Source: Klebsormidium nitens
Lineage: Eukaryota; Plantae; Klebsormidiophyceae
Length of the DNA stretch: 64,000 nt
NCBI GenBank assembly: GCA_000708835.1
Contig: DF237080.1
Coordinates: 1 to 64,000, forward strand
Direction: 5' to 3'
Position numbers and translations under genes: made by a program. Of this stretch, positions 3,843 to 61,604 are shown one piece after another (position 1 is the stretch's first letter; every line of letters starts with the position of its first letter). The notes below the pieces were generated by a model. That model was not told the origin of the DNA, searched no databases, and saw nothing but the letters and a program-made list of their open reading frames with translations.

Positions 3843-5428
3843 GTTTGCATCATCGGCGCTCCCTGCTCTCAATGGCAGCCTCCAGGGGCAGCTCTTCCGG
3901 AGGCCTTCCAATAACTAGTAAGGAGGGCTTGTCAACTGGCGCCGTATCTGGAGATCCTCAGCATGAAAGGAAAGAGGGGAGGGGTTCGAAATACATGCCT
4001 CTTAAAGTTGTAGAGGGTGAGCTGTCCTCTCCCGCTGTCAATGCGGGCAACGTGTTGGGCCGCTTGCTAGATCACAAGCTCCGGGGGCAGCGGCCTGCAG
4101 AGCGGCAGGGTGCAAAACGCGGGGAAAGTCCTGGGGGTGTTTTGGAAGACGAGTCAGCCTCCGAGGTTGAGCGTGAAATAGGTGATGAGCAAGCACTCCC
4201 AGCGGTATCCGGCGCCGATTTGGTGAGGCAGAGCGCATCCGTAGAGCAGAAGGCGGGTGCTGATGCCGCAGTCGATGATCTGGGTGGGGTGAAGGAGGAA
4301 ATCGTGCTTGGGAAGACTGGGGAAGCGTCAGCAAACGTCAGAGGTCCTGGGGCGCGCACTGGGCTTCTCTCCCGGCAGGGAGTGCTTTCAAAGCTCAGCT
4401 CCTTTCTGGCGGGTTCTCCGAGGATTAGGCAAGCGGGGGGGTCCCAAGCTGATGTCAGCACCGTTGCGGCGCCTGGCTTGCGAAACCAGACGGCCCAGAA
4501 AGACATGACAGTGCAGTCGAAACCGTCCGTCGTGTTGCACAACCTGCGAAATGCCCGTGGGGGTGCCCGGGAGACCTCCGATTCTGAGTTGAGGCTTATC
4601 GAGGAAGCGAGAAGGGCCCTGGGCGAGCCGGGTCCCGCCGGGGGGGCCGAAACGGGTGCGATGTCAGGGGGGAAGAACGAGGACATTTTGGAGTCGGCGG
4701 ATGATCGCTGGGACCTCATGCGGATTGAGAACAAGCTGAAAGCAGAGCAGGAGTATGCGGCGTACATGGGAAACTTAGAGGACGAGAAAGCGCGGGCGGA
4801 GGCAGCCGAAGCGACGAGGCTGAAGGCTGAGGCAGACGGGGCCGGAAAGGACAAGCAGAACGGGAACGCAGACGGGCGGAACGGACTAGCGGAAGAGCGG
4901 AACGGACTAGCGGAAGAGCGGAACGAGGCAGCGGAGGAGCGGAAGGAGGACGCGGGGTTGGGCGGAATTGGGGCGGGAGATGGGAACGGAGAAGAAGCGG
5001 GTGCCAAAGGGGAAGCGGAGGGGGGTGAAAAGGAAGCCGTCGAGACTGATGACAAATCTAAAGAGGCAGATGGGGATAAGCCGATGGAACTAGATGGGGA
5101 GCAAGGTGCGGCGTTGAGCGGGGGTCAGGAGGCGGAGTCGAAAAGCGAGGGGGGGGGCGAGGAACTGGAGGTTGTCACGGACTCCGAAGCAAAGGATCGG
5201 GACGGAATCAAAAGCGAGGAGATGACGACAGAAGAAGGAGTCGACGGAAATGATGGTGCGAGCAGTGCAGGAGAGAAAGCGGAAGACGAAGGGACTTGGG
5301 AGGCCGGTCTGGCGGCGGCCGTTGAGTTGGAGAGCCCTGTCAAAATTCAGGGGGCAGACGGAGCGGCCACAGATACCCCCTTTGAAAGGGACGCGAGCGA
5401 AGAGGGGGAGGGGAAAGCGGCCGAATGA
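3843..5428 (+). CDS. Long open exon encoding a low-complexity Gly/Glu/Ala-rich, probably disordered protein; function unknown
   Basis: 527-codon open frame preceded by a good acceptor (cttcttctgcag|, 3842). A phase-compatible candidate upstream exon lies near 3630-3690 (IYQSSTRCFEALKEKQAEIKA). It contains a short coiled-coil-like segment and 21-bp internal repeats. No recognisable domain. Confidence 0.5.
4877..4945 (+). repeat. 21-bp coding tandem repeat (RNGLAEE-type heptad), 3-4 copies
   Basis: gcggaacggactagcggaaga occurs twice exactly and is followed by degenerate copies. Confidence 0.8.
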
Positions 5429-6856
5429 GAGAGTGAGCCCGGAAAGAGAGCAGAAGAGGTTTGATCGACGCAATGAGCTGCCTAACACATGATTGACGCA
5501 CAGATGATTCTTTGCCCGGGGGTTTGCCCCGGGCCGCTTCGAGAGTGACGCCTGTAAAGGCCACGCTGACACCTGAAGCCTGCGTAGAGCATGTTGCGAA
5601 TAGGAGATGGCGAGGAGAGCATAAGCGATGGAGTGAAGGTGCACAGCCGCACGCGAATCGGAGAAGTTAGAGACCAGGATAAGGTTAGGTTTGCTTTTGA
5701 TCTTTCTAGTGTCAAAATGTCGTTGCCACTAGCTTTGTAGCAACAGAGAGACCCTCCATCAACGCCCTCCATAGTCATTTAGCAGTAGACGCGCATCAGA
5801 GAGATAGATAACCAGATGTCATGCCCGAGAAGTTCCGTAAGGCAGCAGTTTGACATTCACCCTTCATTGAGTTGCACATTGCAGGTATACTAACCGTTAA
5901 TCACTGTTCCGCACCGCTGGCACTATTTGCCTTGCCAGATGAAGCTTACATTGCGATTGTGATCAGACGAGGGGAATCATTTAAAGACACTGGCTGAGAG
6001 CGGGAATTTTATCCTTGATCATGCATTGAATGTCGCCCTCTACACAGATTCTCCATCCGCGGACGGCCTTTTTTGTCAGCCGCCGGCCAACTACGTGAAG
6101 CCAGATCATTGGCTCATATCAATGATGACGGTTCAGTATGTTGATGTCTTGATATACTATATTGACGTACTCTGGCCATCTTTCATCGCGGCCCGTTCTT
6201 ACGCACGCGCGGTCGTGCATTCTCATGTGTGCAGCGCAACTTGTGTACACTGCAGGCAGTAATGTCAAACTTCTGAGAGTGGAGATAAGCTACATGCCAA
6301 GTATGGTGTCAGCTATATGTGGGTGACCATGGAAATTGAGCCGTCAAACATACATGAATTCTGGTCCGCCTGAATATCAGCATCGTCGATGCCACATAAT
6401 CTGCATAATGGCCATGAATGCAAAGTCGACCGCATGTCTAGCAAGATATACTGGATCTGCATATCGACCTGGCTGTCACTTGGCACAAATGATCATCATT
6501 GTGGTCCATGACCGGACGACTCAGTGATCCCGAAGAAGAGGGGGAGTCACGGTGCCTTAAGGCAGTGCGGTATGCCATTAATTCCATGCAAGGAGTGGTG
6601 CTCTACTCGGACCTCTACTCTCTGCAATTGAAAAGGAAACCCGCGGTGTTCGATTATACCACGATAGGCCCATTTCACGTAACGTACGCGTGGTCCCCGC
6701 GTGGTATTGGGGTTGTTGGATTTCTGACGCCGTCGGAGATGCTAACCGGAGGCTGACGTCACGCGCCAGGCAAACACCGACGCAGTGACAACCCTGAAAT
6801 CATGCGTCAAGCCAGGCAAACCCTCCGCCAACACACACTGACAGAGCGGGGTCACG

Positions 6857-7055
6857 TCAAGGAGAATCAGTAATTTGGGCCGGGGACGTTGGAAGGGCTG
6901 ACGTGGCGGGGTTTAGAGGCGGAACCCTGGGTTGGGCTGCTCTCGACCAATCTTGTTGGGGGAGTCTCGGGTCAAACCTCAAACCTCGCCACGTCAGCCC
7001 TTCCAACAGATTGAGCACCCCCAGCCCCGGTCGCCAAATTACTGATTCTCCTTGA
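6857..7055. repeat. ~200-bp foldback (long inverted repeat) upstream of CFAP44
   Basis: tcaaggagaatcagtaatttgg (6857-6878) pairs perfectly with 7034-7055. gttggaagggctgacgtggcggggttt (6888-6914) pairs at 26/27 with 6981-7007. Confidence 0.85.
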
Positions 7056-38932: not shown

Positions 38933-41900
38933 ATGGCTTCTTCGGCTCAGGTAAGGTTTTGCAGTCCTTCAAACTCATGTAAGTTGGCTCATGAGATGAC
39001 TGCTTTAAGCATTAAATGAGCTTTGCGGTTTGCGTGCGTTTCAAGCCCTGTTGCGGGGCAGTTTAAGGCAATGCCGTCTCGAGTTGGGGAACCATATATG
39101 CGATCTTACCTTTTGAAGGCCACAGAATGTGAATCTCTACTGATGCCGCAAGCTGATTCAGGAAGGGATTTCTGCGGGAACCGACCACAGAACACCATCT
39201 TTTTGAATGTTTAGCAGTACAAATTACTCTCACTCCTGTAAGATGACGACTCAGATTGCTGAAGTAAACTGCAACACTGGGCATCCCTTTTGCAACCGAG
39301 AAATGCACATCTTGAACGTCAGCTCTTTTGCATCAACTTGCCGCTTTCATCCTTGATTTGATGTCAGCAATGTTTTGGGGCAAATGCTGAGGCTCAAAAG
39401 CAGAGCCTTTGCGAGACTTTGCGAGCTGTCTCTGCATTCACACAGGGATTCCGCTGCAGGTGCCTGCGTCGAGCCCTGCCAGCCGCTTTGTGAAGGCCGT
39501 CGAGGAAGGAAAGCCCTGGATTGCGGTGGACGATCTTTGCCACCTCCTGGATCCAATCAACCCGGGAAACGGGTTCTCTGAGCAGGACTGGAAGGTTGCG
39601 GAGCTCAAGTCTACCAAGGCCTTCAGAAAGGTGAGAAGAGTTCCCAAAGAGCGTACTGTTGGTCTCGCCTTCTAAGATGGAATGTGTCTCACCTGTCCAC
39701 TGTAGTGGCTTGGTTTGCATTCGGCCCCAAAACGGGGTCTCGTCGACTTTTTCTTCAATTTTTTCAACCTAGCATTCAGCAGCTGAGGTATGCAGTTGCT
39801 TTCCAGTGGATGATGCATAAGAGGCGCACTTGATTGACCTTGATAGGCTACATCAACTTATCCTACTCAAGCATTCGCATCTTTCACCATTCACATCTTT
39901 AAGGTCGACAAGGCCTGGCACTAAGGGACTACACTTGCGTGCTCAGAAAATCTCTGGACTACCTTACCACCCTGCTTTTCATTTCGGGCCCTGTCCCGAC
40001 TCCTGGGACCCTCGATCCATCTGGAACGCCATTGGCAAGGACCCCCCGAAACTGTGATTATCTGTCACGATTGCAAACTGTTTCTTAAAGCAGGCTGCGA
40101 GATCCATTGCGGGCATTCTTTCCGTCTCAGGTCTTGCGCTTCGTGAACGACGATGATGCGGTGCGCGCTCTCCTCTCTGTGCTGACCTCCTCACATAGGG
40201 GGAGCCACGCAGACTGCATAAAGCTCTTGTGGTGCATAAGCGGGTTGTCGCTGGTCCCAAAGTTTGCGAAGCAGGTAAGCAACATCACAGCGCTTGGATC
40301 CAGCCACTTGCTAATCCTTTCGGTTCTGCCACTTATCAGTTTGCTGTGCATCAATGTCAAAAAAACATGCGCAGATATGGACAAAGAAGCATCACTACAT
40401 GCGTGGACCCAGGCGAGATTTTGCTTTACGAACTTAAATCCTCGATGGCAGAACTGGCTTCGGTCCCTAACGTCAGCAAGTCTTCGTGTTGTGTTCGTGG
40501 GTACTGGCGTTCGTCCAAAGCTGGCTACTGGCTTTCAACGAGCAGCTTCGAAGATCTGATCTAAAACAGGCTTGTTAGAACTCTTTTGTGGAGCGCTGTG
40601 GACTTCAGACCGCAACTGCTTCAAAGTGTCCAGTACATTCCTGAATTGCAGATGACCGCTTCTGGAAGGCGACTCCTCTCAAGAAAGAGCATTCTTCGCT
40701 GTTTCGGAGGTCGATCAGTCTAGCACACAAGATAACGAGATTTCCGTGCTCAGAATGAATGTTTGACAGGCCAAAGGCTCTTGTGCAGAGGTCAGAGGTT
40801 GTCTCAGCCTGCTCTCTGTCTTGTGCAATTTGTCAACCCATTACTTCGCCAAAAACCTGCTCCTTCTTCAGCTTTTTCCGCTGTGCCTCAGATCCCAAAC
40901 TAATTTCTCCTATCTTCCGCAGCTTACAGACTGCGGTGCTGCAGACGCTCTCGCCAACATCTGCCCTCATCACCTCGGGCTCAGCCAACCGGGGCTCCTC
41001 TCCGCAGCCGAATGGGAGCGCGGGGAGTTCTTCCCGGTCACCAGGCTCTACCTCGAGCTAATCGAGTTCCTTCTCAAAAACAGCCCGGGTTTTGCGGCGG
41101 GGGCCTTCGAGCACAGACTCTTCTCCCGGTTGATGCGGCTCTCTGTGCTCGACCCCCATCTCTTGCCGAGACTCTCCCCAAAGGCCGTCGGCGCCGGTGT
41201 CGCCTACGCTCAACGGCTCCTTCACACTTTTTTCGTCTTCTTCGAAGTGAAGCTGACGAACCAAGTGTTGGCCGAGGTCACCCTCTCCGAACTCGGTACC
41301 TGGCTCGATCGTCACTGGGCCTTCACAGCGGTAGTCCAACGGATTCTGCCCCCGACGGAAGCGAAAAGCTTTGTTACGTTTGCCGGCACCACCATCTACT
41401 TCACGCTCACGCTCCTCTGCTCGCGGAACGAGGAGCGGGAGTTGTTCACACCGGCCCAGTTGGCCCGCGTTCGCGGGCGCGTCGAACGGTGTCTCGAGCT
41501 GCAAGGCCCCCCCGGGAAACCGGAGTTTCGGGAGATGGTGGAAGACTGTCTTCGCATGATGGACACCGGGCAGATGAACCAGCCCTCCCCCTTCGACACG
41601 AGCAACTTCTTCACGCCGCCCGCTCCCGGAGAACCGTCCCGGCAAGCGCGCGCCCATAGGCTCCTCGCGAGTCTGGGTCCGAGCGCCAGCCACAAAAAAG
41701 GGAGGTTGCGGGAGCTGGTTGACGTCGTCGTGAGCTCCAAGTGGGTCCACTCGGACGGCGAGGAGCTGACACGTGGCGGCGCCCTGTGGACGCTCTTCCG
41801 GCTGCTGGAAACGGACGTCGCGAAACTAGAGCGGCAGCGCGCCCGCCCCGGGCCGTCGCGGACGGGGCTGGTCCTGCGCGCCATGTCCTCGATCCTCGGG

Positions 41901-44585
41901 GTCGGGACGGAGCTCCTTCTCCGTTCCGCCCTCTTCCGGACGGAATCCCCGGACGGTCTTGAGGGCTTCGGACCGCGGCTCCTCGAGTGGGCGTTGCCGA
42001 CGTTCGAATCCCTGGCTCCCATAAACCGCGCGGACGTTCTTCAGGTCCTTTTCGCCTCGTTCCAAACCTTCCCCCGGGCGAAGTGGGCCGCCCGGCACAA
42101 GCTCGTGGGCCTCCCTTTGAGGGTTCTCCAGGAACCGGTCGAGAACTTCATTTTCGGCCGGTTGGTGTGGATGTGTCTCGCTTCTCTAGTTCTCTTCCTC
42201 CCCGACTATAACCCGCAAGTGGTCGCCCAAATGGACGCCTGCGAGCGGACCTTTCTTAGGCGGGGCGCGCTAATGGCCGCAGGGGACGAGTATCGAGCGT
42301 TAATCGACACCCTCGCGGCGGAGATCGACGGCGGGCGCGCGACGTGGCCGCCGGAAGCGCGGGCCGGTGACGTCACCGTCGAAGCAATCAGAGTTTTCAA
42401 CCGGGCGACCCTGCGGAAAGTGGACCACAAAAGCGCGTGCTGTGAGGCGGCCACCGTTTTCTTGTCGACCTTCCGCGACCCCGCTGTTCTCGAACAGTGT
42501 TTACTCCCGGCCGTCGAGGCGGTGATCCCGCTCGTGAGAAAGACCCATGGAGAGTTTGCCGAAGGGGTCTGGGACGGGGGGGTGCATTTGGGGCCGTCTC
42601 CAGTGGAAGACGACCCCCTCGAAACGAGTCTGAGAGCGGGACTCTCGCTGAAACACGGCCTGCGCCTCGCGGAGGCGATCTTCGAACGCGCCGCGGAAGC
42701 GAAGCTCGAGGTGGGCGAGCGCACGCTCTGGCGCGTGCGCACGGAAGCGCTCCAGACGCTGACGTCAGTCCTCGGCCTCCTGCTGACGTCACACCGAGCG
42801 CACCCCTCAGAGCGCGCCCCGTTCTTGCGTAAGGTGGGGGAGGCAGGGGGCGTCGAGCTAACGGCCGAGATTCTGCGGAAGGAGCCGCGGGTCCGCCTTG
42901 CGCTGGCCACGTGTCACAGGGATAACAATGCCACGTTGCTCAAGGAGTGGGTTCCGGGGATGCTGGAGCTCGCGCGCGACTTGTGGGACGAGCTTGCGGC
43001 GGAGTTCTGGTTTCTAGAATGCAGCAATAAGGTGAGCAGACGGCGCTGCTCATGTTCTCCTGTGCTCAATGCCTTGTCTGTCCAGGACCGAATTGTCTGA
43101 TCCGATCGCGTTTCTCCACTGGGCTTAACCAAGCCCGGTCCGAACATCAGAATTCAGAGCTGTGTTGCGGAAGGAACGGAGTAGGCGGTCTCAGAGCAGA
43201 ATTGCGAAGTTTGTTCTAAACGAGCATCAATTATAATTAGCAGAGATTTGGGTCGTCTTTGAGGTGCGGGCAGTGAGCTTTCAGTTTTGCTGTTCTTAGC
43301 CCTTTCTTCGCATGACAGTTTATCATGAACGGGTCTGCCCTCCTCGTACCTTAGTGGCCTGACCCGTAACCGGTTACCGAGGGGAAACGTTTCTTCCTTG
43401 AGAGAGGCATGGTGAAGCGGGTCGTCGCTTTGGCTGATTCTTGTTGTTGTTCTTCGTTGTGCGGCAACCTAGTTGCCTGCCGCCGTTCATACTCTCGTGA
43501 AGTGTCGTTGTTACGGTGGACTCGACGGTTTGTCTGCTAAGCATCTCGAAACGCTTGCCCAGTACTCCCGCACAGTACTCCCAGTGATCCCGCTCTCTCA
43601 CAACAGAATTACCGAAGGTAGTCGAGTTCCGGCATCGTCGTCCCGTTTCTTTGAGGACGTGGAGACGGATTGGCTGATTGCTGACGAATTTAAAGAGATT
43701 CTTGATTCATCCGGCACTGAGGTGATGTTTCACACGATTTGACACTGTCTCTTTCACAGAAATGCGAGCGGGACATGGTGGAGACAGTCAGGAAGACGTT
43801 CAAGCGGTGCAGCGGGTGCCAAAAAGCGCAGTATTGCTCAAAAGATTGTCAGGTGAGGCCTCTGTAGATGTTCAAGGTTCACAGCTATCTCTTCTTTGAT
43901 TCCTCTTGAAATTTCAGACCCCAAAATTCTCTGCAAATCAGCTCCCGGTGTAAGGCAAAGAAATCCCTCCCCGCTTTCGAGCTTAAGATTCAAACGGGAG
44001 CTGTCGACGTCGTTGCACGGGCTATGTCTGGTTCTTTCTGAGTATTTGTCAATAGATTCCACGCCGAAAACCACACACAATTGGCTGGGCGGCAGGAATC
44101 AGGCTGTGTCTGGATATCGCTTTTTGAACGGCCACAGAGATATTCGAAACTAGCTGTAAGCACTGAAGAATACGTATTCGCAGTCCTCGAAGTTCTGCGC
44201 CTACTGAAGGATACTTGCAGATGCCAATGCCAAAGAGAGCGGCTTCCTTTCGCAAACGAACTCTTTGTTTCGGCGTCGAGCAATCTTTGTTGACAGGAGT
44301 GCGCAACGCCCAGTGCTTTGAAAGGATCTAAACAGACAGTTTTCATTCCCCCTGTTTGTCAGGACAGGCTGCTTTAAACTGCTTGCTAAGCTCCAAAGGT
44401 ACCAGGATGTTGCTGCCTTGCCAATTCTGGGTATGTACGCAGTCGGCGAAGAAAGCAGCAGCCTTTCTTTCACTTGTCACCTTGTCACTGACGATGCTCT
44501 TTTTGTCTCTCAGCTTAGGCACTGGAAACACGGGCACAAGGCGGACTGCCGAAAAGTAGCTCAATCTGCAGCGCCGGGGAATTAG
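38933..44585 (+). CDS. MYND-type zinc-finger protein with a long helical (ARM/HEAT-like) N-terminal region, 6 exons, ~868 aa
   Basis: Phase-0 exons 38933-38950, 39460-39630, 40131-40274, 40923-43031, 43760-43852, 44514-44585. Splicing reconstitutes ECSNKKCERDMVETVRKTFKRCSGCQKAQYCSKDCQLRHWKHGHKADC, a canonical MYND pattern. The ARM/HEAT call rests only on Leu/Ala-rich amphipathic composition. Confidence 0.85.
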
Positions 44586-48016: not shown

Positions 48017-48860
48017 GTGAGTCCTCCGGATATTGCCAGTCACAATCACTGACTGGTCTGCTGGTCTGCGCTGAGACGACTCAACAAGTCTTGATTGTAA
48101 TGGGAACGGCTCACGCAGTGAGAGCTCAGCCAAGTTGCAGATTCCCAGGATAGCAAGTCAATTCAGCCGTTGTTGCCAAACGTATTCATGCAGTAGAAGC
48201 GCTGTACATCTAGAAGAGTGGAACGGGATGAGTCAACTCGTCTGTCAAGGCCAGCTTTGCGGCGTGCTACCGCCTCAGGATTGCATCCACGGATCTTACT
48301 AGAAGTGTCCAACTGTTGACCGAAATTCAAGTCAAGAGTGCTTGCAGAATTAACTTTGCCTTGCAGTTGAGTCTACTCTGAGGAATCTTGGCGCAGCTGG
48401 GTTGGAAGCTCACACTGCAGGAGTGGCAGCGAGAATTCAGTCGCTGGAAGGCCATTGACCGCTTATTCAGTAGATTGTACTCGGACTCTGACAGCGAAAC
48501 CGCGTCATGATGATGCAATTCGAGCCTTCAAGCGGATGGGCTCAATGGGTCATTGGTCGAATGCATTGAATGCAAGCGCATGACGTCGACATGATCCTGT
48601 TGCCGACATGGTCCTTGTGCCATTCGGAGTCAAGCAGCTGAAAAAATACCGGAGCTAGCAGTCAACGATGACGTTTCGCCGCCGAGGGATCCCTCGAGTT
48701 CACGCCGGTGCCGGGAGCGGTCCGGCGGAATCCGGTGGAGGGTCAGAATCGACGGTGCAAGAATGCAGAGCAACAGACAGCTGCAGAAGGCACAGAACCG
48801 TGACAGAGCAGGGGGTCCTTAGTGGACAGCGCAAGGCGGCAACCTGGCCCAAGCAAGGCA

Positions 48861-49976
48861 ATGGCAACAGCAAGTTTCCTCAAGAATACCCAGCTTTCTG
48901 GAGCGAGTCCCTGTCAGAAAGTGGTCGCGTCATTAGGCGGCGCCTTCTTGGACAGAACGGGCCTGGCTGGGCACTCGTCAAAGCTGCGCTGTGCTAACAG
49001 TACCAGCCTGGAATGCCTTGCTCCTACAAGCACTATTTCCAAGAGGTGTGGACTGGTTGACATTTTTAGGCAGGGCACGCGGACTGACTTTCGTGGGGTG
49101 CCTGGAGTTGCTGTCTTGTCTTGTAAAGGAACGGGGTCAAGTCAATGGCATGCTGAAAGTGATGCTTGTAAGAAAGCCTCCCAGAGGCCTGTTGTGACTG
49201 CATCAGCGAGCCAGAGAGGGTGGCTGGAAAGAGCAGAAGCCGGTGATGCGGAGAAGCTGATTGAGGATCAGGAGGAACGGGAGAACACCCGGAAAGCAGC
49301 ATCTGCAATTGACTTCACTGACAAGAAGCTGTGCACAGATTGCGGGGTCCGGAAGCCCCTGCGGAACTTCGAAAAGCTTGTCACGAGTGCCGATGGGAGA
49401 CACCTTTCGTGCCGAGCGTGCCGAGCGTGCCTCGCCAAGCGCCGGGCGCAGGAGCAGGGCAGTGAACTGTATCACCTTGCTATGCCAGTGACTGAAGCAT
49501 GGGCGCAACCAAGGGCATGCCATCAGTGCAAGCAAGTCCAGGAGTTGCGTGACTTTGCTCGTCGCTCGCAAAGCAAGGATGGTCTCAGACCATACTGCCG
49601 AAGCTGTGCCAGTGACGATAATCATAGATGGTCCGAACAGACCTCCAGTGTGCCTTTTGCTGAAACAGCGACGTGCCCTAAGTGTGAGCAGCAGAAGCGC
49701 GCCGACGAGTTCTACATTCGAAAACGTCACAGACATAAGCTGGCGTCTTGGTGTAAGACCTGCACTAAGCAGGCTACTAGAGAACAGAAAGCAAGAGCTA
49801 GAGCAGCCGGGAATTACATTGAAAGAATCGATAAGGTCTGCAGGGTATGTCTCGTAAACAAGCCCAGAGAGTCATTCGGAATTCAAAGCAATAAAAGAGA
49901 CGGCCTTCAAGATTACTGCAAACAGTGCAGTGTTCTTCAGGGAATATCACGGAAACGCTCGTCGAACGAGGCATGA
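48861..49976 (+). CDS. Intronless protein (~371 aa) with four tandem CxxC...CxxC zinc ribbons and a putative plastid transit peptide
   Basis: Repeats: CTDCGVRKPLRNFEKLVTSADGRHLSCRAC, CHQCKQVQELRDFARRSQSKDGLRPYCRSC, CPKCEQQKRADEFYIRKRHRHKLASWCKTC, CRVCLVNKPRESFGIQSNKRDGLQDYCKQC. The N-terminal ~115 aa are Ser/Thr/Ala/Arg-rich and acid-poor, ending VVTASAS. The ORF track starts at a GTG (48822); the first ATG is 48861. Confidence 0.8.
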   Translation: MATASFLKNTQLSGASPCQKVVASLGGAFLDRTGLAGHSSKLRCANSTSLECLAPTSTISKRCGLVDIFRQGTRTDFRGVPGVAVLSCKGTGSSQWHAESDACKKASQRPVVTASASQRGWLERAEAGDAEKLIEDQEERENTRKAASAIDFTDKKLCTDCGVRKPLRNFEKLVTSADGRHLSCRACRACLAKRRAQEQGSELYHLAMPVTEAWAQPRACHQCKQVQELRDFARRSQSKDGLRPYCRSCASDDNHRWSEQTSSVPFAETATCPKCEQQKRADEFYIRKRHRHKLASWCKTCTKQATREQKARARAAGNYIERIDKVCRVCLVNKPRESFGIQSNKRDGLQDYCKQCSVLQGISRKRSSNEA

Positions 49977-55110: not shown

Positions 55111-56477
55111 GTAGAGAGCGCCAGGTGAGTCTTCCCAAAAGTGTCAGTCGCAATATTCACTGACTGAGTCTGCTACCAGATACTGAATGACGACACGTCA
55201 AGCTGGCTGTACCGAGAACGGCTGCAAAGCCCAGATGGCCTTGCCTGTGCAGGTTTCTACAAGCTTCGGCCAGTCAAACCAGTGAACCAGTCATGATCCG
55301 CAGCCGGACATAAGGAACGGCATGCGTAAGAGACTGAGCTGACATGCTGTCTGCAGCACTTCGACATCACTAGACTAAAGACGTAAATATTACCGCCCCA
55401 GCATTGCAGCCGTACCGGATCAAAGACCCCTGATCATCAATGTTGACCGCAGCTGCAGAACTTGTTCTGCCAGCTAGTCGCAACTGAGCAGTTTGAGCTG
55501 CTTCGGAAAGCCGCACATGCATGTACTGCGGCAGTTGGCAGCAAGAATTCAGCCGCTGGAAGCGTGCGCATTGCTGACTACCGGAGTGCCTAGGGTGTCC
55601 TAAATGTCGAGCAAATCATTGCATATTCGGACTGCCCACAAGTTATCGGACGTGGAAGTACGGTCAATAGGTCAATAGGTATCCACCGTCTGTGCCGAGC
55701 AGCTGAGATAATACCGGCCCCGCTGGTCAAAGTTGACCTCGGAGGGATCCCCCTCCGACTCGGAACCCGGAAATGCGCCCAGTCCGGGCGGATTCGCGCG
55801 CGCGGCGCGGACATCATGACAACGTCACTGGTCAGGTCAGAAACTGGGAAAACCTACCCCAGCTGGGGCCTAGTAGGTAGAGTTGAGCGCAGACGTCAGC
55901 GCAGCGGATGCGTGGAAGGAACTTCAAAATGATTTCGAGATTCGCACGCTTTTCGCTTGCACTGGGCGTGGCAAAGCTGCCCGGCGGCAGGAAGGCCAAA
56001 AGACGCTCTGAATAGTAGCTGAAACATGCATTCGCTTTTGTGCCTCGTGTAATTGTCCCCTCAGAATGGACCATAGCAGAACAGGAGCAACTTAGTTCGA
56101 GAGATAAGTCAGCTTACGGCTCCCAATACTGGACACGCTATACTATAGCCAGCGTCAGCTTCTTACTTCACTCCTTGTGGTGAGCCTCTGCAGGCTCTGC
56201 AATTTGCGTAAGGCTTTGATGACATTGCTGCATTGCAGCTCAATCACAATGTAATGTGAAAAAGGCCTGCATTCAGCTGCCTGCATCTGAACAACAACTT
56301 CAAGGGGCATCACAGTGGCTGCAAATGATGGATGCCCTACTAGAGGGCATCCATCTGAATCAGATGTTTTCACCCGTCTCTGGAGCTACTTAACATATAC
56401 CCCAACCACTTACGTCAGAAAGCCCCACTAGAAATGCTACTACTAGGCCCCTGAGACTTGAGCCAGGCGAGTCCAAG

Positions 56478-59400
56478 ATGTCGGAGCAGGAAGATGCATT
56501 CACCTGGAGCCGCGCACTCCCAACCGCACAGCTGGCGTTTAGTGGCGAGTCCGCAGCCAGCGAGGGGTGCAGTGCGAGGAAGCGGGATCGTTTGACAGGC
56601 GCCGATCTAAGCTCACCCCTTGCGGAACAGGGCCAAATCCCCTGGGAGGATCAGTTCCTCAATGTTGCCCCCCAAGAATGGCCGGAGCAGGAAGGCGCGC
56701 TCCTTTTCGCTGAGCAGGGGGGTGGTGATTTCCCAGCTGATGCAGCGGACCTTCCCCCCGCCAAGATGCAAACAGGGCGCTCAGCAGGTCAGCCCCCTCA
56801 ATCGACGCCGAGTGGGATCTTCCTTGGAGCTTTCAGCAGCATATCGAGTGTGGGGGATAGAGCCTCAGTGGGGGGCAAAGATGTGGCGGGGGACGCATCG
56901 CCTTCACCCCCCCACTCGCTCGCGACCGTCCTGCCGAACCCCGGAAGAAGGGAGCCGTTGGTGCTGACGACAGAGGAGATACAGCTTGCATACAAGGAGA
57001 GCTGGGGGTGGGGGGGCCGCCCGAAACCGCGGCCGCTCGAGGTGGCCCCGGTTGCACCGCAGCCTGCGAAGATTGACGTTGTTGAGGGATCCTCCCGTGA
57101 CACGGGGGCGACCAAAGTGCAGGCAGCAGCGATCATACGTGAACTGTTCCGCCGCCCCAGGGGGGTGCCTGTGGAGCAGGCGCCTGCCGGGGGGGGTGCG
57201 AATGCTCAGTTTCAAGACCCCCCTTCGGAGCATGGGGGGGCTTCCTCCCAGGAAAGCTGGATGGGGACAGGGGGGTCAGTATCGGGATCAGGCTCTGCGA
57301 TTGGGGCTGAGGCCGGGGGGGTTCCGTCCAGGGCAGAGCAGATTGAGACTGACGAGGCGCCGCTTGGAGTAGGTCCTCTTCCCGGCTCGTATGCCCCACG
57401 GAAGCCAGCGCCACAAAGAAGCGGATCTGAGCGAAACAGGGGGGTAATTGCAAGCGAGCAGGAAGCCCCCCTCTTTGACAAGAACGTAGAGCGGCGAAAG
57501 CGTGCAGCTGGCGCGTCTGGCTCCAATACTCTCGATGGCATGTCAGCTGAGCCGGCGAGCTCGACGCCTGAGGGCGGATCCGGCAATTCTTCGGAGCCTG
57601 CGGAAGAAGTGACGTCACTGGCGCTGGCGATCGAGCTGGCGAGCTGCCAGGTGGCGCTCGCGACTTCGATCACGGACCTCGATGTGGGGCTACCGCTTTA
57701 CGACCCACAAAAGGCTCGGGGCAGCCACCCTGACGTTTCTGTGGGGTTAGCGGCTGAGAAGGGTTTGGAGGACTGGGTTTCGGGAGACCCTGTCGTTGCC
57801 GGCTTCGAGTGGCTCTTGGAGGCGGACCCTGTACCGGGGGAGGAGCCTGAGAGAGGGACTTCTTTCGATGGTAGGCGTGCGGCAGGTAAGCGTGAGGTCT
57901 CATCCTCCGTCCTCATCTATTTCATCTGTTGTTTGATCGTTTTTTCTCTTCAATCCAGCAGAGGAAGGAGTATCTGATGGTAGGCGTCTCAATAACCTTG
58001 AGAGAACCACGAGCAAGGGTGTTTACAGCCCTCGCCCCGAATGCACGGGAAACCTTCATCAGCGGATGGCGTCTGATCACCTTCCCTCTAAGCTGATCAG
58101 CCAAAAGGTCTGCGGTCCTCATGTGCAAGATTTTTAAAGGCATATGATCGCTGCTTTGATCCTACCATGTGACGAGTCGCTGGATCATTGAAGATTCCGA
58201 AGCAGTATTCATTGCATCTGTGCCACAAGCTGGCTCACTTAGAGAATCTGCAAACAGCCGTATTTTTTACTCATCTGACCTGACTTTTGACCGTGCCGTC
58301 TTTGGCAGCTAAGACCGTCCAGGATTTGTAAAGTCCCCACGTTACTTAGCACAGCTGTCTGCTTTTCCAAAGCGCGTAAAGCAGTCCCCCAACAGGCAAT
58401 CGCCTGTATGTATTGCAGATTGACGGAACTGTGGTCAGCAGCCAAACCCCTTTTGACGTGCCCAGCCTTCAAACTAATTCTACAAGCCGCCCCGTTCTAC
58501 AGAAACCCTGTCGCAAACCCCAAAACTCCACCGCCTCTGGGCGGACCTGAGCCCATCGGAAGTCCGGCGGCCGCAGTTCCGACCGTTCCGAGAGGCGTAT
58601 AAGGAAGAACTCCGGCGGCTGCGCATCTGGACGGCGACCTACGCAGGCCCGGCGATCATTCCCCGGGTTGCCGAGCTGCACTACCTGGCATGTAATGCGC
58701 TACCCGGTTTGGGAGACCGGCACACACGGTGAGTCTGCCGGCCCCATCTGCGTCCTGCAATGCAATTCTAAGTCTCGTCGATTCCCTTTTGTGTACTGAG
58801 AAACATTGAGTGGAACCGCAGGGCCTAAGAGCATCTTCCCCCCTTTTAGGGATCTGCGGTTCCGGACGGGCAGAGCAGAAACCTTACTCCGGACCTAACA
58901 GATTTAGTCGGTAGGTTGACACACGTTTTTTGAAATAGTGTTCAAACAATCCGAATCTATAAAGTCCTGGCATGCTCGGTAAACTGCTTCATTAAGGTCC
59001 CGGTCGCTTTGCCCACCGTCTAAAGTCGAGAATTTTCGAAGTAAGGGCCAATAGTCTTTCTTCAGTGACAGATCGTCGAACCGCCGTCGCTTTTCCGCGC
59101 GCACGCAGGATGATGCTGACCAAGGGCGCGCTCTGGACTGCGTTTGTGCGCCACTCGTTGGGGCGCGCCAGCCCCGCGGACCTCTACTTCGCGTGCCATG
59201 ACGGTCAACGGGTCTACCGGGGGGAGAGCGGGCCGTGGCTGCTGTCCAAATTATCGCCCGCCATGCAAGACCAGTGCCGCACCATGTGCTTCCTGATGGA
59301 GGACCTCAAAGTGGGCCTCTCCACTCGCGAGTGCGTTTGGAATCGGACAGCATTGAAGCATGAGTCTCAATTATTATTTTGCAGCTCGGCGAGAAAGCAG

Positions 59401-61111
59401 TTGAACCGCTCCCGACGTTCCAGAGTTTTCCTTTGTTGTAGGAATCCGACGTGTCATTCTGCCTGACGCTTTTGCCGCGCTCTTAATAATGAACGGCTGA
59501 TCATCAAGCTAATCTCAATTCGAAAACCTGGCACAGGACGAAGCCGCGTATGGCCCGGAGACGTTCCGCGCGTACCAGGGCCTCCATAAGTCGGGGGGTG
59601 TAGACCTTCCCCCACCGCGCCGCGGCTGGGCTTATCGCCAGGTGTCATTCCCGGAGCTCGAAACCCCCCCAATATCGTGGCCCGCCGCGGTCGACGCGCT
59701 CTGCACGGAAATGGAGGGCTTAGAAACGGGCCCCGTCGAACGGATCGAATTCGAAGGCGACCCGGTTTTCAACGAAGTCTGCTTCACGCCCATGGGCCTC
59801 GCCGCGCGCTGGGGCAGCTTCTGGCACAACCGCGGCCCGCTGCTCGCGGCCGCGCGCGGCCTCGCGGCCGCGGGGGAGCGCGCGCGCCACCGCGTGGCGG
59901 ACCTCGCGGAGCGCGCGATGGACGGCCACGTGGCGCGCTTCGACGCGATGGCGGCCGGGGGATCATCCGGGTCGGTGGAGAAATTCCTGGAGTACGCGCG
60001 CGACGAGGCCGGGTGGCGGGTGAGCCTCGCGCTCGCGTTCTGCGCGGTCGGGCAGAGCCTCGCGGACGCCGGACGGTGGGAGCCGACTGCGGACGGAGTG
60101 AATGCGCTCTTTGGCGAGACGGGGAGGGGGCTCGAGCTGGCGGCGAACGTCGTACAGATCACGAGCGATCTCAGGTGCGTTCGCGGACCGGACGTCTCGA
60201 TTCTGGTCTGAGGCTTGACTCGCTTTTGCAACGCGCAAACGGCGCTGACTCCTCTGATTTGACAGTCGGGGCTCGGAATTCAGCGCCGATGGAAAGAACG
60301 GCGCTGATCTTCTCTTTTGAATGCGGAGGAGCAGAGTTTAGCACCCCGTCACTCTGCCTGGCAGCTTCCCTTGTCAATGTTGGTGGCTGATTGTAAGCTT
60401 GAAACCGGGTCTCGAATCTGAGTGTGTTTTTAGTGGCACTGTGACATCTCTGACGTAAGATCCATAGCGTGGACTGCTCCTTCTTACTGCGCCTTTTGGC
60501 GGCTGCTTTATACTCTTACAAAGCTGAGACGGAGCGTCGCTAATTCACAAACTTCCCCCCCACCTTTGGAAATTGACCGATTGTGCGTTAGGCTTCGAAC
60601 GATCATTGAACATAGAAAGACGCTTTAGCTGATTCCCAAGAGGACAATCTCGGGCGCACTCGCACACAAGATGTTGCACGGCCAGTTTGCAAGTCGCTAG
60701 ATGCGAAATCTGCGGAAGTCGACGATATACCATACTGTCCAGCCTCTGTGGGAGCTATTGGCCTCTCCGTCGAAAACAACATCTTGGGTGCCAGCTTAAG
60801 GGGCCCCAAAATCGTGTCGCAGGACGTACCAGGCTGACCTCAGCCAAGCCCGGCTCAACGCCGTCGCTGTCTGCATGCGCGAGCAGGACTGCGGCCACAG
60901 CCAAGCGGTCGCCCATCTGACCGCCCGGGCCGCCGCGGACCTCAGCCTGCTCGCGCAAGAACTGGTGGCGCGCGCGCCTGGCGGTGACCTGTTCGCGCGC
61001 AAATGTTGGCGACTGGTGTTCGACCTGTGCCGCACGGCCGCCACGTTGGTCACGTATACGGCCGCGGAAAGCGGGGGGAGCCGGCATGAAAATCTCTTTG
61101 AAACCGGTTAG
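56478..61111 (+). CDS. ~885-aa protein: disordered N-terminal half fused to a degenerate class I (microbial-type) terpene-synthase-like domain
   Basis: Phase-consistent exons 56478-57885, 58503-58728, 59109-59310, 59642-60174, 60823-61111. The spliced product has SVEKFLEYARDEAG (cf. sleeYlxxRRxtxG) and AANVVQITSDLRTYQADLSQARLNAVAVCMREQDCGHSQAVAHL (cf. NDxxSxxKE...N.v.v.m.e.g.s.qeAv). Gene-structure confidence is high; the fold assignment is by eye. Confidence 0.7.
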
Positions 61112-61604
61112 GGTTAGCGAATACGTTTTGCTGTTTGCGGAGTCGCGTGGCTCCTTGGGAGCAATGTTGTCGTTTTTAAGGCAGCGGCCTAGTAGGCATC
61201 ATACTCTCAGGTAGCCGGAGTTGATTGCGTCAAGAGGCGATACATGTCTTCTCAATGCTCGATCGTCAAATGGTGTATCAGAGCTAGCTAGCGCACAAGA
61301 TGTCTAGCTAGCTAGAGTCAGGTTTTACTGTACATACACTTGAAACTAGGAAGGGAATCACCGAAATAAGGTGCCATGTCGTTGCAGTGCAGATGGTGCA
61401 CTAGTCCATATCAAGCTAGTGTACGTACAAGATACGTTAAGTCAAACGTCTTGCGCGCATTCTGGGGTTGATGTCATCCAAATTTCATTTTCATTTGACC
61501 GATACACATGTGACGCTCCTTATATATGGCATGGATAGACAAACAGCTACGCATATGTATACCCTAGACGGTCAACCATGTAGCTGTGTTGGCTCAAGTT
61601 CTAT

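Follow-up and report, generated by a model that had tools for sequence, protein, structure and literature searches.

The gene considered here occupies positions 56478-61111 on the forward (+) strand of the window, i.e., the whole 64,000-nucleotide stretch of contig DF237080.1 (assembly GCA_000708835.1, positions 1 to 64,000) of the alga Klebsormidium nitens that was analysed. It is a nuclear gene of five exons, whose coding sequence of 2763 nucleotides specifies a protein identical, letter for letter, to GAQ82976.1 (UniRef A0A1Y1I2K7; Klebsormidium nitens, 920 aa). Residues from about 480 to 920 of this protein correspond to a strongly diverged class I terpene synthase (TPS) alpha domain, linked to a long low-complexity N-terminal region. 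The whole is a TPS-fold protein that is selectively maintained without the canonical three-metal site, and it is probably not a conventional terpene cyclase. The surrounding region is eukaryotic in character, with GC-rich exons and introns of the GT..AG type. The name "Cupredoxin superfamily protein", under which GAQ82976.1 is found in the databases, is unsupported, a Pfam search over all 920 residues returning Terpene_syn_C_2 alone.

The exon structure is documented by Logan contigs from four public runs, each belonging to a different study, that were placed on positions 56300-61400. These runs carry no RNA label, but their contigs count as transcripts because only spliced molecules yield joints of this kind. 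All four GT..AG introns (57885|58503, 58728|59109, 59310|59537 and 60174|60823) are seen in each of the four runs, and a single contig of 2646 nucleotides, which starts upstream of 56300, spans exon 1 and ends in exon 4, joins exons 1-4. For the donor site of exon 3, the genomic sequence allowed either 59311 or 59335, and the spliced contigs fix the junction at 59310|59537. Intron sequence is covered solely by low-depth contigs of one run. Once joined, the exons 58503-58728, 59109-59310, 59537-60174 and 60823-61111 give one open frame. The gene is real, spliced and expressed. An earlier, sequence-only reading of the window had compared peptide segments of the spliced exons 2-5 with those of terpene cyclases; all the segments it quoted are found in place and in one frame after splicing, the frame is intact over the four introns as claimed, and transcripts failing to join these exons, which would have spoken against it, look excluded. 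A 24-nucleotide GC-rich tandem repeat of 2.2 copies occurs at 59831-59882 in exon 4, where the transcript contigs of three runs break; these breaks are an assembly effect.

All five exons lie on the + strand. Exon 1 (56478..57885) contains the start codon and the open reading frame for residues 1-469, and is joined to exon 2 in the spliced contigs. Exon 2 (58503..58728) opens the alpha domain, with predicted helices at positions 24-66 taken for helices B-C (here and below, domain numbering starts with position 1 at protein residue 470), an invariant CNxLP motif, and the stretch that is matched by BLASTP to a canonical synthase. Exon 3 (59109..59310) encodes the helix taken for D, modelled by AlphaFold (AF2) at domain positions 70-94, followed by a degenerate Asp-rich site, a loop and short helices. 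Exon 4 (59537..60174) comprises the end of the long helix taken for E, an insert, the helices taken for F and G and most of H, and covers positions 63-137 of the Pfam profile PF19086. Exon 5 with the stop codon (60823..61111) completes the motif-bearing helix and adds the C-terminal helices, with invariant RLNAV, MRE and CR, and covers profile positions 166-192.

The N-terminal region encoded by exon 1 is of a quite different nature, being acidic and rich in A/G/S/P/E. Residues 1-469 consist for 76.5% of the disorder-promoting amino acids A/G/S/P/E/Q/K/R/D/T, carry a net charge of -26 and match no Pfam family at E <= 10. Their only hydrophobic window, which is also the only conserved block among the N-termini of the family, corresponds to residues about 374-445 (57597..57812, + strand) and was delineated from an alignment (A7) of the N-termini of the family proteins P0002, P0003, P0004 and P0005; it combines a hydrophobic, helix-like stretch with LP.YDP and F(E/D)W, all common to the paralogs. 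The length of the region varies, with about 260 and 350 residues in the paralogs and about 460 in a more distant lineage, and the association of a variable N-terminal region with the same fold recurs both in the paralogs and in a homolog that is about 35% identical over the part compared. The predicted disorder of residues 1-469 is thus supported by the composition and the evolutionary rate of the region, and the fusion of the fold to a long low-complexity region, already proposed in the earlier reading, is visible in the spliced contigs as well as in the composition.

The assignment of the C-terminal part to the terpene synthases is based on several lines of evidence. The Pfam family PF19086 (Terpene_syn_C_2) matches the spliced C-terminal 451 residues (470-920) with 36.2 bits (E 7e-9), well above the gathering cutoff of 23.7, over profile positions 63-192 of 199; this was the profile comparison proposed beforehand as a check of the fold. 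Taken singly and unspliced, exons 4 and 5 give weak yet colinear matches to the same family (E 0.02 and 0.05). The exon 2 region aligns by BLASTP with residues 453-567 of a canonical TPS, designated P0023 below (E 1e-9). A profile of the family built without any canonical synthase, P0023 being excluded (profile A6), was aligned by hhalign to the alpha domain of P0023 with a probability of 99.3% and an E-value of 4e-20, over 279 columns with 27% identity and with the N-terminal helices included. Compared with solved structures, four of the five matches of the same profile are terpene synthases, with abietadiene synthase (E 0.014) and tolypothrichol synthase 9kgb (E 0.022) as the best ones. Single-sequence searches of solved structures with exon 4 or with the whole C-terminal domain returned nothing useful, a comparison by language-model features, made with exon 4 alone, was equally unproductive, and NCBIfam holds no match for the algal protein.

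Structural models lead to the same assignment. The ESM Atlas model of exactly GAQ82976.1, predicted without a multiple sequence alignment, has as its best structural neighbour a bacterial PF19086 cluster, with TM scores of 0.55 (query) and 0.77 (hit) over 290 residues. An AlphaFold model from a two-row alignment was unusable, with a predicted local distance difference test score (pLDDT) of 37. The model from a 28-row alignment reached a predicted template modelling score (pTM) of 0.72 and a mean pLDDT of 66.9, low confidence being limited to domain residues 1-10 and 148-250; the 28 rows included P0023, so that the independence of this model from canonical synthases is incomplete, whereas the Atlas model is independent. 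With the AF2 model as query, the best 50 PDB matches found by Foldseek are all terpene synthases; a comparison of this type had been suggested by the earlier reading. With VIA-align against 48,161 chains, the best 50 comprise 49 class I TPS-fold proteins and one ent-copalyl diphosphate synthase, with Z-scores of 17-26, a root-mean-square deviation (rmsd) of about 3-4 A and 237-313 aligned residues, compared to a reference level of Z about 13-14 for unrelated helical models. The class I terpene cyclase fold, proposed from the letters of the window, is accordingly borne out by the Pfam, hhalign, ESM Atlas and AF2 evidence. A chance resemblance to terpene synthases was considered and ruled out by the profile, profile-profile and fold evidence, and a solved structure showing a different fold likewise looks excluded.

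With respect to the class I TPS alpha domains of known structure, such as alpha-bisabolene synthase (3sae), tolypothrichol synthase (9kgb) and selinadiene synthase (4okm), the algal domain displays the same helical fold (Z 23-26, rmsd about 3 A, 281-311 residues) and shares, in colinear order, the CNxxP motif, the PS(L/V)E.(Y/F)L block, the skeleton of the helix-H motif and the N..V that follows it. It differs from them by the absence of DDxxD, by the S/T/D ligands at the NSE/DTE site, by the lack of an RY dipeptide, by an insert of about 80 residues, by extra residues after the helix taken for D, which are also apparent against P0023, and by the disordered N-terminus of 469 residues.

The metal-binding motifs deserve a closer description. 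In the ungapped register that follows the LW shared with P0023, DDFFD of the canonical enzyme falls on R559-H560-S561-L562-G563, so that RHSLG (residues 559-563; 59149..59163, + strand) occupies the DDxxD position at the C-terminus of helix 70-94 of the model, the usual place of that motif. In alternative registers, BLASTP and hhalign open a gap and set one Asp of DDFFD on Asp569 of ASPAD (residues 565-569; 59167..59181, + strand), the first Asp being set by hhalign on His560. An SPxD motif with this Asp is invariant in the family, and Asp569 is the sole conserved acidic residue near the lost DDxxD. The Asp pair is present in no register, at most one Asp, that of SPxD, being available; hence no DDxxD occurs at the end of helix D. 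The second site maps unambiguously: SDLRTYQAD (residues 822-830; 60164..60838, + strand, split by intron 4) aligns with NDIRSYEKE of P0023, NDTKTYQAE of abietadiene synthase, NDIRSFERE of 9kgb and DDLGTSYFE of bornyl diphosphate synthase. When compared to the consensus (N/D)Dxx(S/T)xxxE, its second Asp and its Thr fit, whereas Ser replaces N at the first ligand position and Asp replaces E at the last; Thr is a canonical alternative to Ser. Three positions ahead of this motif, P0023 and several paralogs have an Arg, which would correspond to the one that contacts the diphosphate in tobacco epi-aristolochene synthase; GAQ82976.1 has Gln. No RY dipeptide occurs after the second motif in the spliced sequence. 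Both motif assignments made from the sequence hold by alignment to canonical synthases, and the loss of DDxxD, the N>S, S>T and E>D replacements and the missing C-terminal RY are all seen as described there.

The insert, at domain positions 161-241 (59588..59830, + strand), appears as a gap relative to P0023 in the hhalign alignment and is located between the helices taken for E and F, with a pLDDT below 50 over domain positions 148-250. It is conserved among the paralogs, as indicated by the recurring YGPE..R.Y..LHKS, FPEL and WGSFW.N.

The gene is one of a small family of paralogs, so far found only in Klebsormidium-like algae. A word-based search with exon 4, restricted by a length filter, recovered a single fragment. 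When 1.84 billion representative proteins were searched with a profile, 25 matches were obtained, including three proteins of K. nitens, namely GAQ82976.1, GAQ89969 (KFL_005840010), which is 43-50% identical to it, and GAQ78407 (KFL_000120530). Other matches are exon-sized fragments from a related Klebsormidium assembly (SRR23617307) and a more distant lineage, about 33-40% identical, represented by two environmental contigs (JGI 3300060284 and ENA ERZ26165376), the remainder consisting of P0023, the one canonical synthase on the list, and of a small number of proteins that are of low complexity or rich in repeats. At E 1e-3, the 1.84 billion representatives contain no match among the synthases of land plants or fungi, nor among the ordinary single-domain synthases of bacteria. 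Two of the paralogs score 35.8 and 41.5 bits against PF19086. A fourth paralog, on contig L005 of the related Klebsormidium (SRR23617307; 739-795, 2282-2359 and 2462-2662 of that contig), is flanked by duplicated pieces of two exons, namely exon 2 and the beginning of exon 3.

Projected on GAQ82976.1, the six lineages share 51 invariant positions. In domain numbering, these include P98, D100 and Y102 (SPxD.Y), D354, R356, T357, Y358 and D361 (xDxRTYxxD), R366, N368, A369 and V370, C64 and N65, and the AFCA block. The positions equivalent to DDxxD vary by lineage (R/A/S/T/Q for the first, H/D/Q/S/C for the second and G/A/E/D/V/R for the last), as do the first NSE ligand (S/N/T) and the position of the preceding Arg (Q/R/C).

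Some family members show irregularities of sequence or annotation. In KFL_005840010 (contig DF237533.1; 4710-4952 and 5006-5077), the end of exon 4 is repeated, the annotated protein having ...VVQILSDLR twice, and its model also contains a stretch of 26 amino acids exactly at the exon 2/3 junction; these oddities are probably gene-model artefacts over a small local duplication. The model of GAQ78407.1 (KFL_000120530, listed above as P0005) extends further to include, at residues about 790-1054, a lipase domain of the GDSL/SGNH type (PF13472, 69 bits), which may be a real fusion or may result from the merging of two neighbouring genes. P0028 carries tandem exon-2-like repeats.

P0023, the closest canonical relative of the algal family that was found, is an uncultured bacterial three-domain (gamma-beta-alpha) TPS, located at 4750-7032 of a contig (L004) of Logan run SRR27422823. 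It possesses the domains PF01397, PF03936 and PF19086 and the motifs DxDD, DDFFD and NDIRSYEKE, and its gene lies in bacterial-type surroundings that comprise an ABC transporter, a PAS/GAF histidine kinase, four response regulators and an adjoining P450. In all these features of motif, beta domain and neighbourhood it contrasts with the algal protein. No relatives of P0023 were retrieved from a scan of bacterial and archaeal genomes.

Orthologous genomic contigs of the related Klebsormidium (L001 and L002), at a synonymous divergence (dS) of about 0.3, allow the selective regime to be estimated. The alpha domain has a ratio of non-synonymous to synonymous divergence (dN/dS) of 0.145 over 437 codons, with 43 non-synonymous and 84 synonymous differences (p about 4e-22 vs neutrality), and is thus under strong purifying selection. 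Exon 3, which contains both RHSLG and SPAD, shows 0 non-synonymous and 14 synonymous changes relative to L001. The N-terminal region has a dN/dS of 0.46 relative to L002, and the introns, where alignable, are 62-70% identical and differ in length. That the gene is maintained, as the earlier reading suggested, agrees with the dN/dS of the domain and with the intact frame. At about position 1630 of L001, equivalent to about 59985 in the window, a run of T in exon 4 contains a 1-nucleotide deletion, beyond which the original frame is conserved; the deletion may be an assembly error or a very recent frameshift.

What such a domain does can be approached from the residues that were lost and from those that were kept. 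Because the Asp pair is lost, the canonical MgA/MgC site cannot form, and conventional ionisation-dependent cyclisation is therefore unlikely. Moreover, no new chemistry would be fixed at this site, because the residues that replace DDxxD vary among the lineages. Conversely, some metal- or diphosphate-type site is presumably still used, because Asp569 and the other residues at NSE/DTE ligand positions are invariant. According to these considerations the protein is predicted, with moderate confidence, to be a pseudoenzyme with a binding or regulatory role instead of cyclase activity. It would no longer assemble the canonical cluster of three Mg2+ ions by which prenyl diphosphates are ionised, and a reduced metal/diphosphate site would be made of Thr826, Asp830 and Asp823, with Asp569 of SPxD nearby. 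The protein may still bind an isoprenoid- or isoprenoid-diphosphate-like ligand, and could serve as a subunit for binding or regulation, or as a partner subunit, displayed on a tether that is long and disordered. Catalytically dead paralogs with an isoprenoid-synthase fold do occur as regulatory subunits, e.g., the small subunit of the heteromeric geranyl diphosphate synthase. Similarly, the alpha domain of plant class II diterpene cyclases is devoid of class I metal motifs, and the relict alpha domain of ent-copalyl diphosphate synthase (3pya), matched here with a Z-score of 17.6, has likewise kept the fold after motif loss. Class II cyclases remain active through the class II site of their beta-gamma domains, in contrast to the algal protein, which has no such domains.

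Several observations weigh against a non-catalytic role, and they lend a serious, if somewhat less than even, chance to an active enzyme with non-canonical metal binding, in which Asp569, Thr826 and Asp830 would form a one- or two-metal site, possibly aided by Arg559 or His560, and in which a prenyl diphosphate would still be ionised or transferred by a cyclase, a prenyltransferase or another chemistry. Asp569, Asp823 and the two residues at MgB ligand positions, Thr826 and Asp830, do not change even in relatives of about 33% identity, which fits a retained metal-dependent chemistry at least equally well; more broadly, D100, D354, R356, T357, Y358, D361, R366 and N368 of the domain are unchanged across lineages that are 33-93% identical. 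The purifying selection is strong, and the presence of several paralogs per genome is typical of the enzymes of specialised metabolism. The paralog on L005 is more canonical, with TDTLD at the first site, the preceding Arg kept and NDLRTYQDD at the second site, and these motifs suggest that parts of the family may be active. In addition, the register at DDxxD is ambiguous by 6-9 residues when the BLASTP and hhalign alignments are compared to the ungapped one. On the other side, the residues in place of DDxxD differ even between close paralogs, the first NSE ligand and the preceding Arg vary too, and a disordered region of 470 amino acids is uncommon for a metabolic enzyme. The loss of the first Asp of DDxxD normally lowers TPS activity by orders of magnitude. 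Precedents for a working fold with altered metal motifs nevertheless exist and count in favour of catalysis: the humulene synthase AsR6 is active with a binuclear Mg cluster and an essential Lys (PMC8457177), the title of the PDB entry 8kih (PhmA) names a type I diterpene synthase that lacks the NST/DTE motif, and PhmA, VenA (7y9g) and the N-prenyltransferase DabA (6vkz) are among the structural matches, with Z-scores of 17-20. No specific sequence relationship between these four proteins and the algal family was detected, and their replacement motifs differ from SPxD and xDxRTYxxD.

The origin of the domain is a separate question. The "microbial-type" label attached to the gene by the sequence-only reading is operationally defensible, PF19086 being the best Pfam model and the beta domain being absent, but it is not demonstrated, plant and bacterial TPS matching about equally, with structural Z-scores (VIA-align) that differ by at most about 3. 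Like the microbial terpene synthase-like proteins (MTPSLs) of non-seed land plants, the algal protein is a stand-alone alpha domain, encoded by a streptophyte nuclear gene with spliceosomal introns and matched best by PF19086. The absence of any PF01397 (beta domain) match in the 920-residue protein agrees with the alpha-only organization of MTPSLs and disagrees with that of typical plant TPS. In contrast, MTPSLs produce terpenes and have retained motifs that are canonical or nearly so (cited in PMC12448838), whereas the algal family is without those motifs and restricted to Klebsormidium-like algae; sequence searches revealed no close relationship between it and MTPSLs or the single-domain TPS of bacteria. 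It is possible, though less likely than not, that the label is wrong and that the domain derives from a plant-type (PF03936-like) alpha domain or from a bacterial plant-like lineage, instead of a single-domain microbial TPS. P0023, a gamma-beta-alpha TPS with PF01397 and PF03936, is the sole canonical match among the 1.84 billion representatives, and the alignment to it reaches through the N-terminal helices, the EL..L..W block included; abietadiene synthase, whose NDTKTYQAE resembles SDLRTYQAD, is the best PDB match of the family profile, and the highest structural matches are plant enzymes. These arguments are opposed by the Pfam scores, PF19086 being about 18 bits ahead of PF03936 in those two paralogs for which both are reported while PF03936 does not match GAQ82976.1 at E <= 1, as well as by the missing beta domain, by bacterial single-domain enzymes within the same narrow range of Z-scores, by the bacterial PF19086 cluster that is nearest to the alignment-free model, and by the possible bias of the AF2 model towards P0023. 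A still more speculative proposal, to which little probability is given, regards the family as an early streptophyte offshoot of the bacterial plant-like lineage behind the land-plant TPS alpha domain, later re-purposed as an isoprenoid sensor or regulatory subunit, tethered by a disordered region, and not as a cyclase.

A decaying relic, i.e., a former terpene synthase gene in neutral drift and transcribed by chance, would account for the lost catalytic motifs and for the deletion in the L001 ortholog, but is very improbable in view of the dN/dS value and the 920-codon frame intact across four introns, which reject a pseudogene, of the same variant motifs retained in paralogs 43-50% identical, and of the frame conserved past a deletion that stands in a T-run of a single-run assembly and may be an error.

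The vicinity of the gene offers no biosynthetic-cluster (terpenoid) context in its large open reading frames. The two nearby ones, at 48822-49976 (+) and 40821-43100 (+), comprise one with a sub-threshold match to the Stc1 domain (23.9 vs 24.8 bits) and another of 759 amino acids without Pfam family. An Rfam scan of the window gave no match.

Typical plant TPS genes are described as absent from green algae in PMC9169658, where Klebsormidium hits, which may be members of the GAQ82976.1 family, are said to have "lacked the conserved features". According to a summary of earlier work (PMC6681836), MTPSL genes were found in only one charophyte species, and a literature search found no mention of the accession numbers of the Klebsormidium proteins. 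In this respect, the present data show that at least one such Klebsormidium gene, which was already in the databases under an unsupported name, belongs to a real family that is expressed and spliced, comprises several paralogs and is under strong purifying selection. The family is marked by a conserved signature of its own: SPxD together with xDxRTYxxD, extra residues inserted behind the long fifth helix, and an extended N-terminus that is disordered. Its K. nitens member, which is probably no conventional cyclase, represents a natural test case for what the TPS fold does once the three-metal site is gone, and it also bears on how plant terpene synthases originated. If the family were indeed an early offshoot of the lineage behind the land-plant enzymes, streptophyte algae would already have possessed an alpha-domain gene prior to the emergence of the TPS family of land plants.

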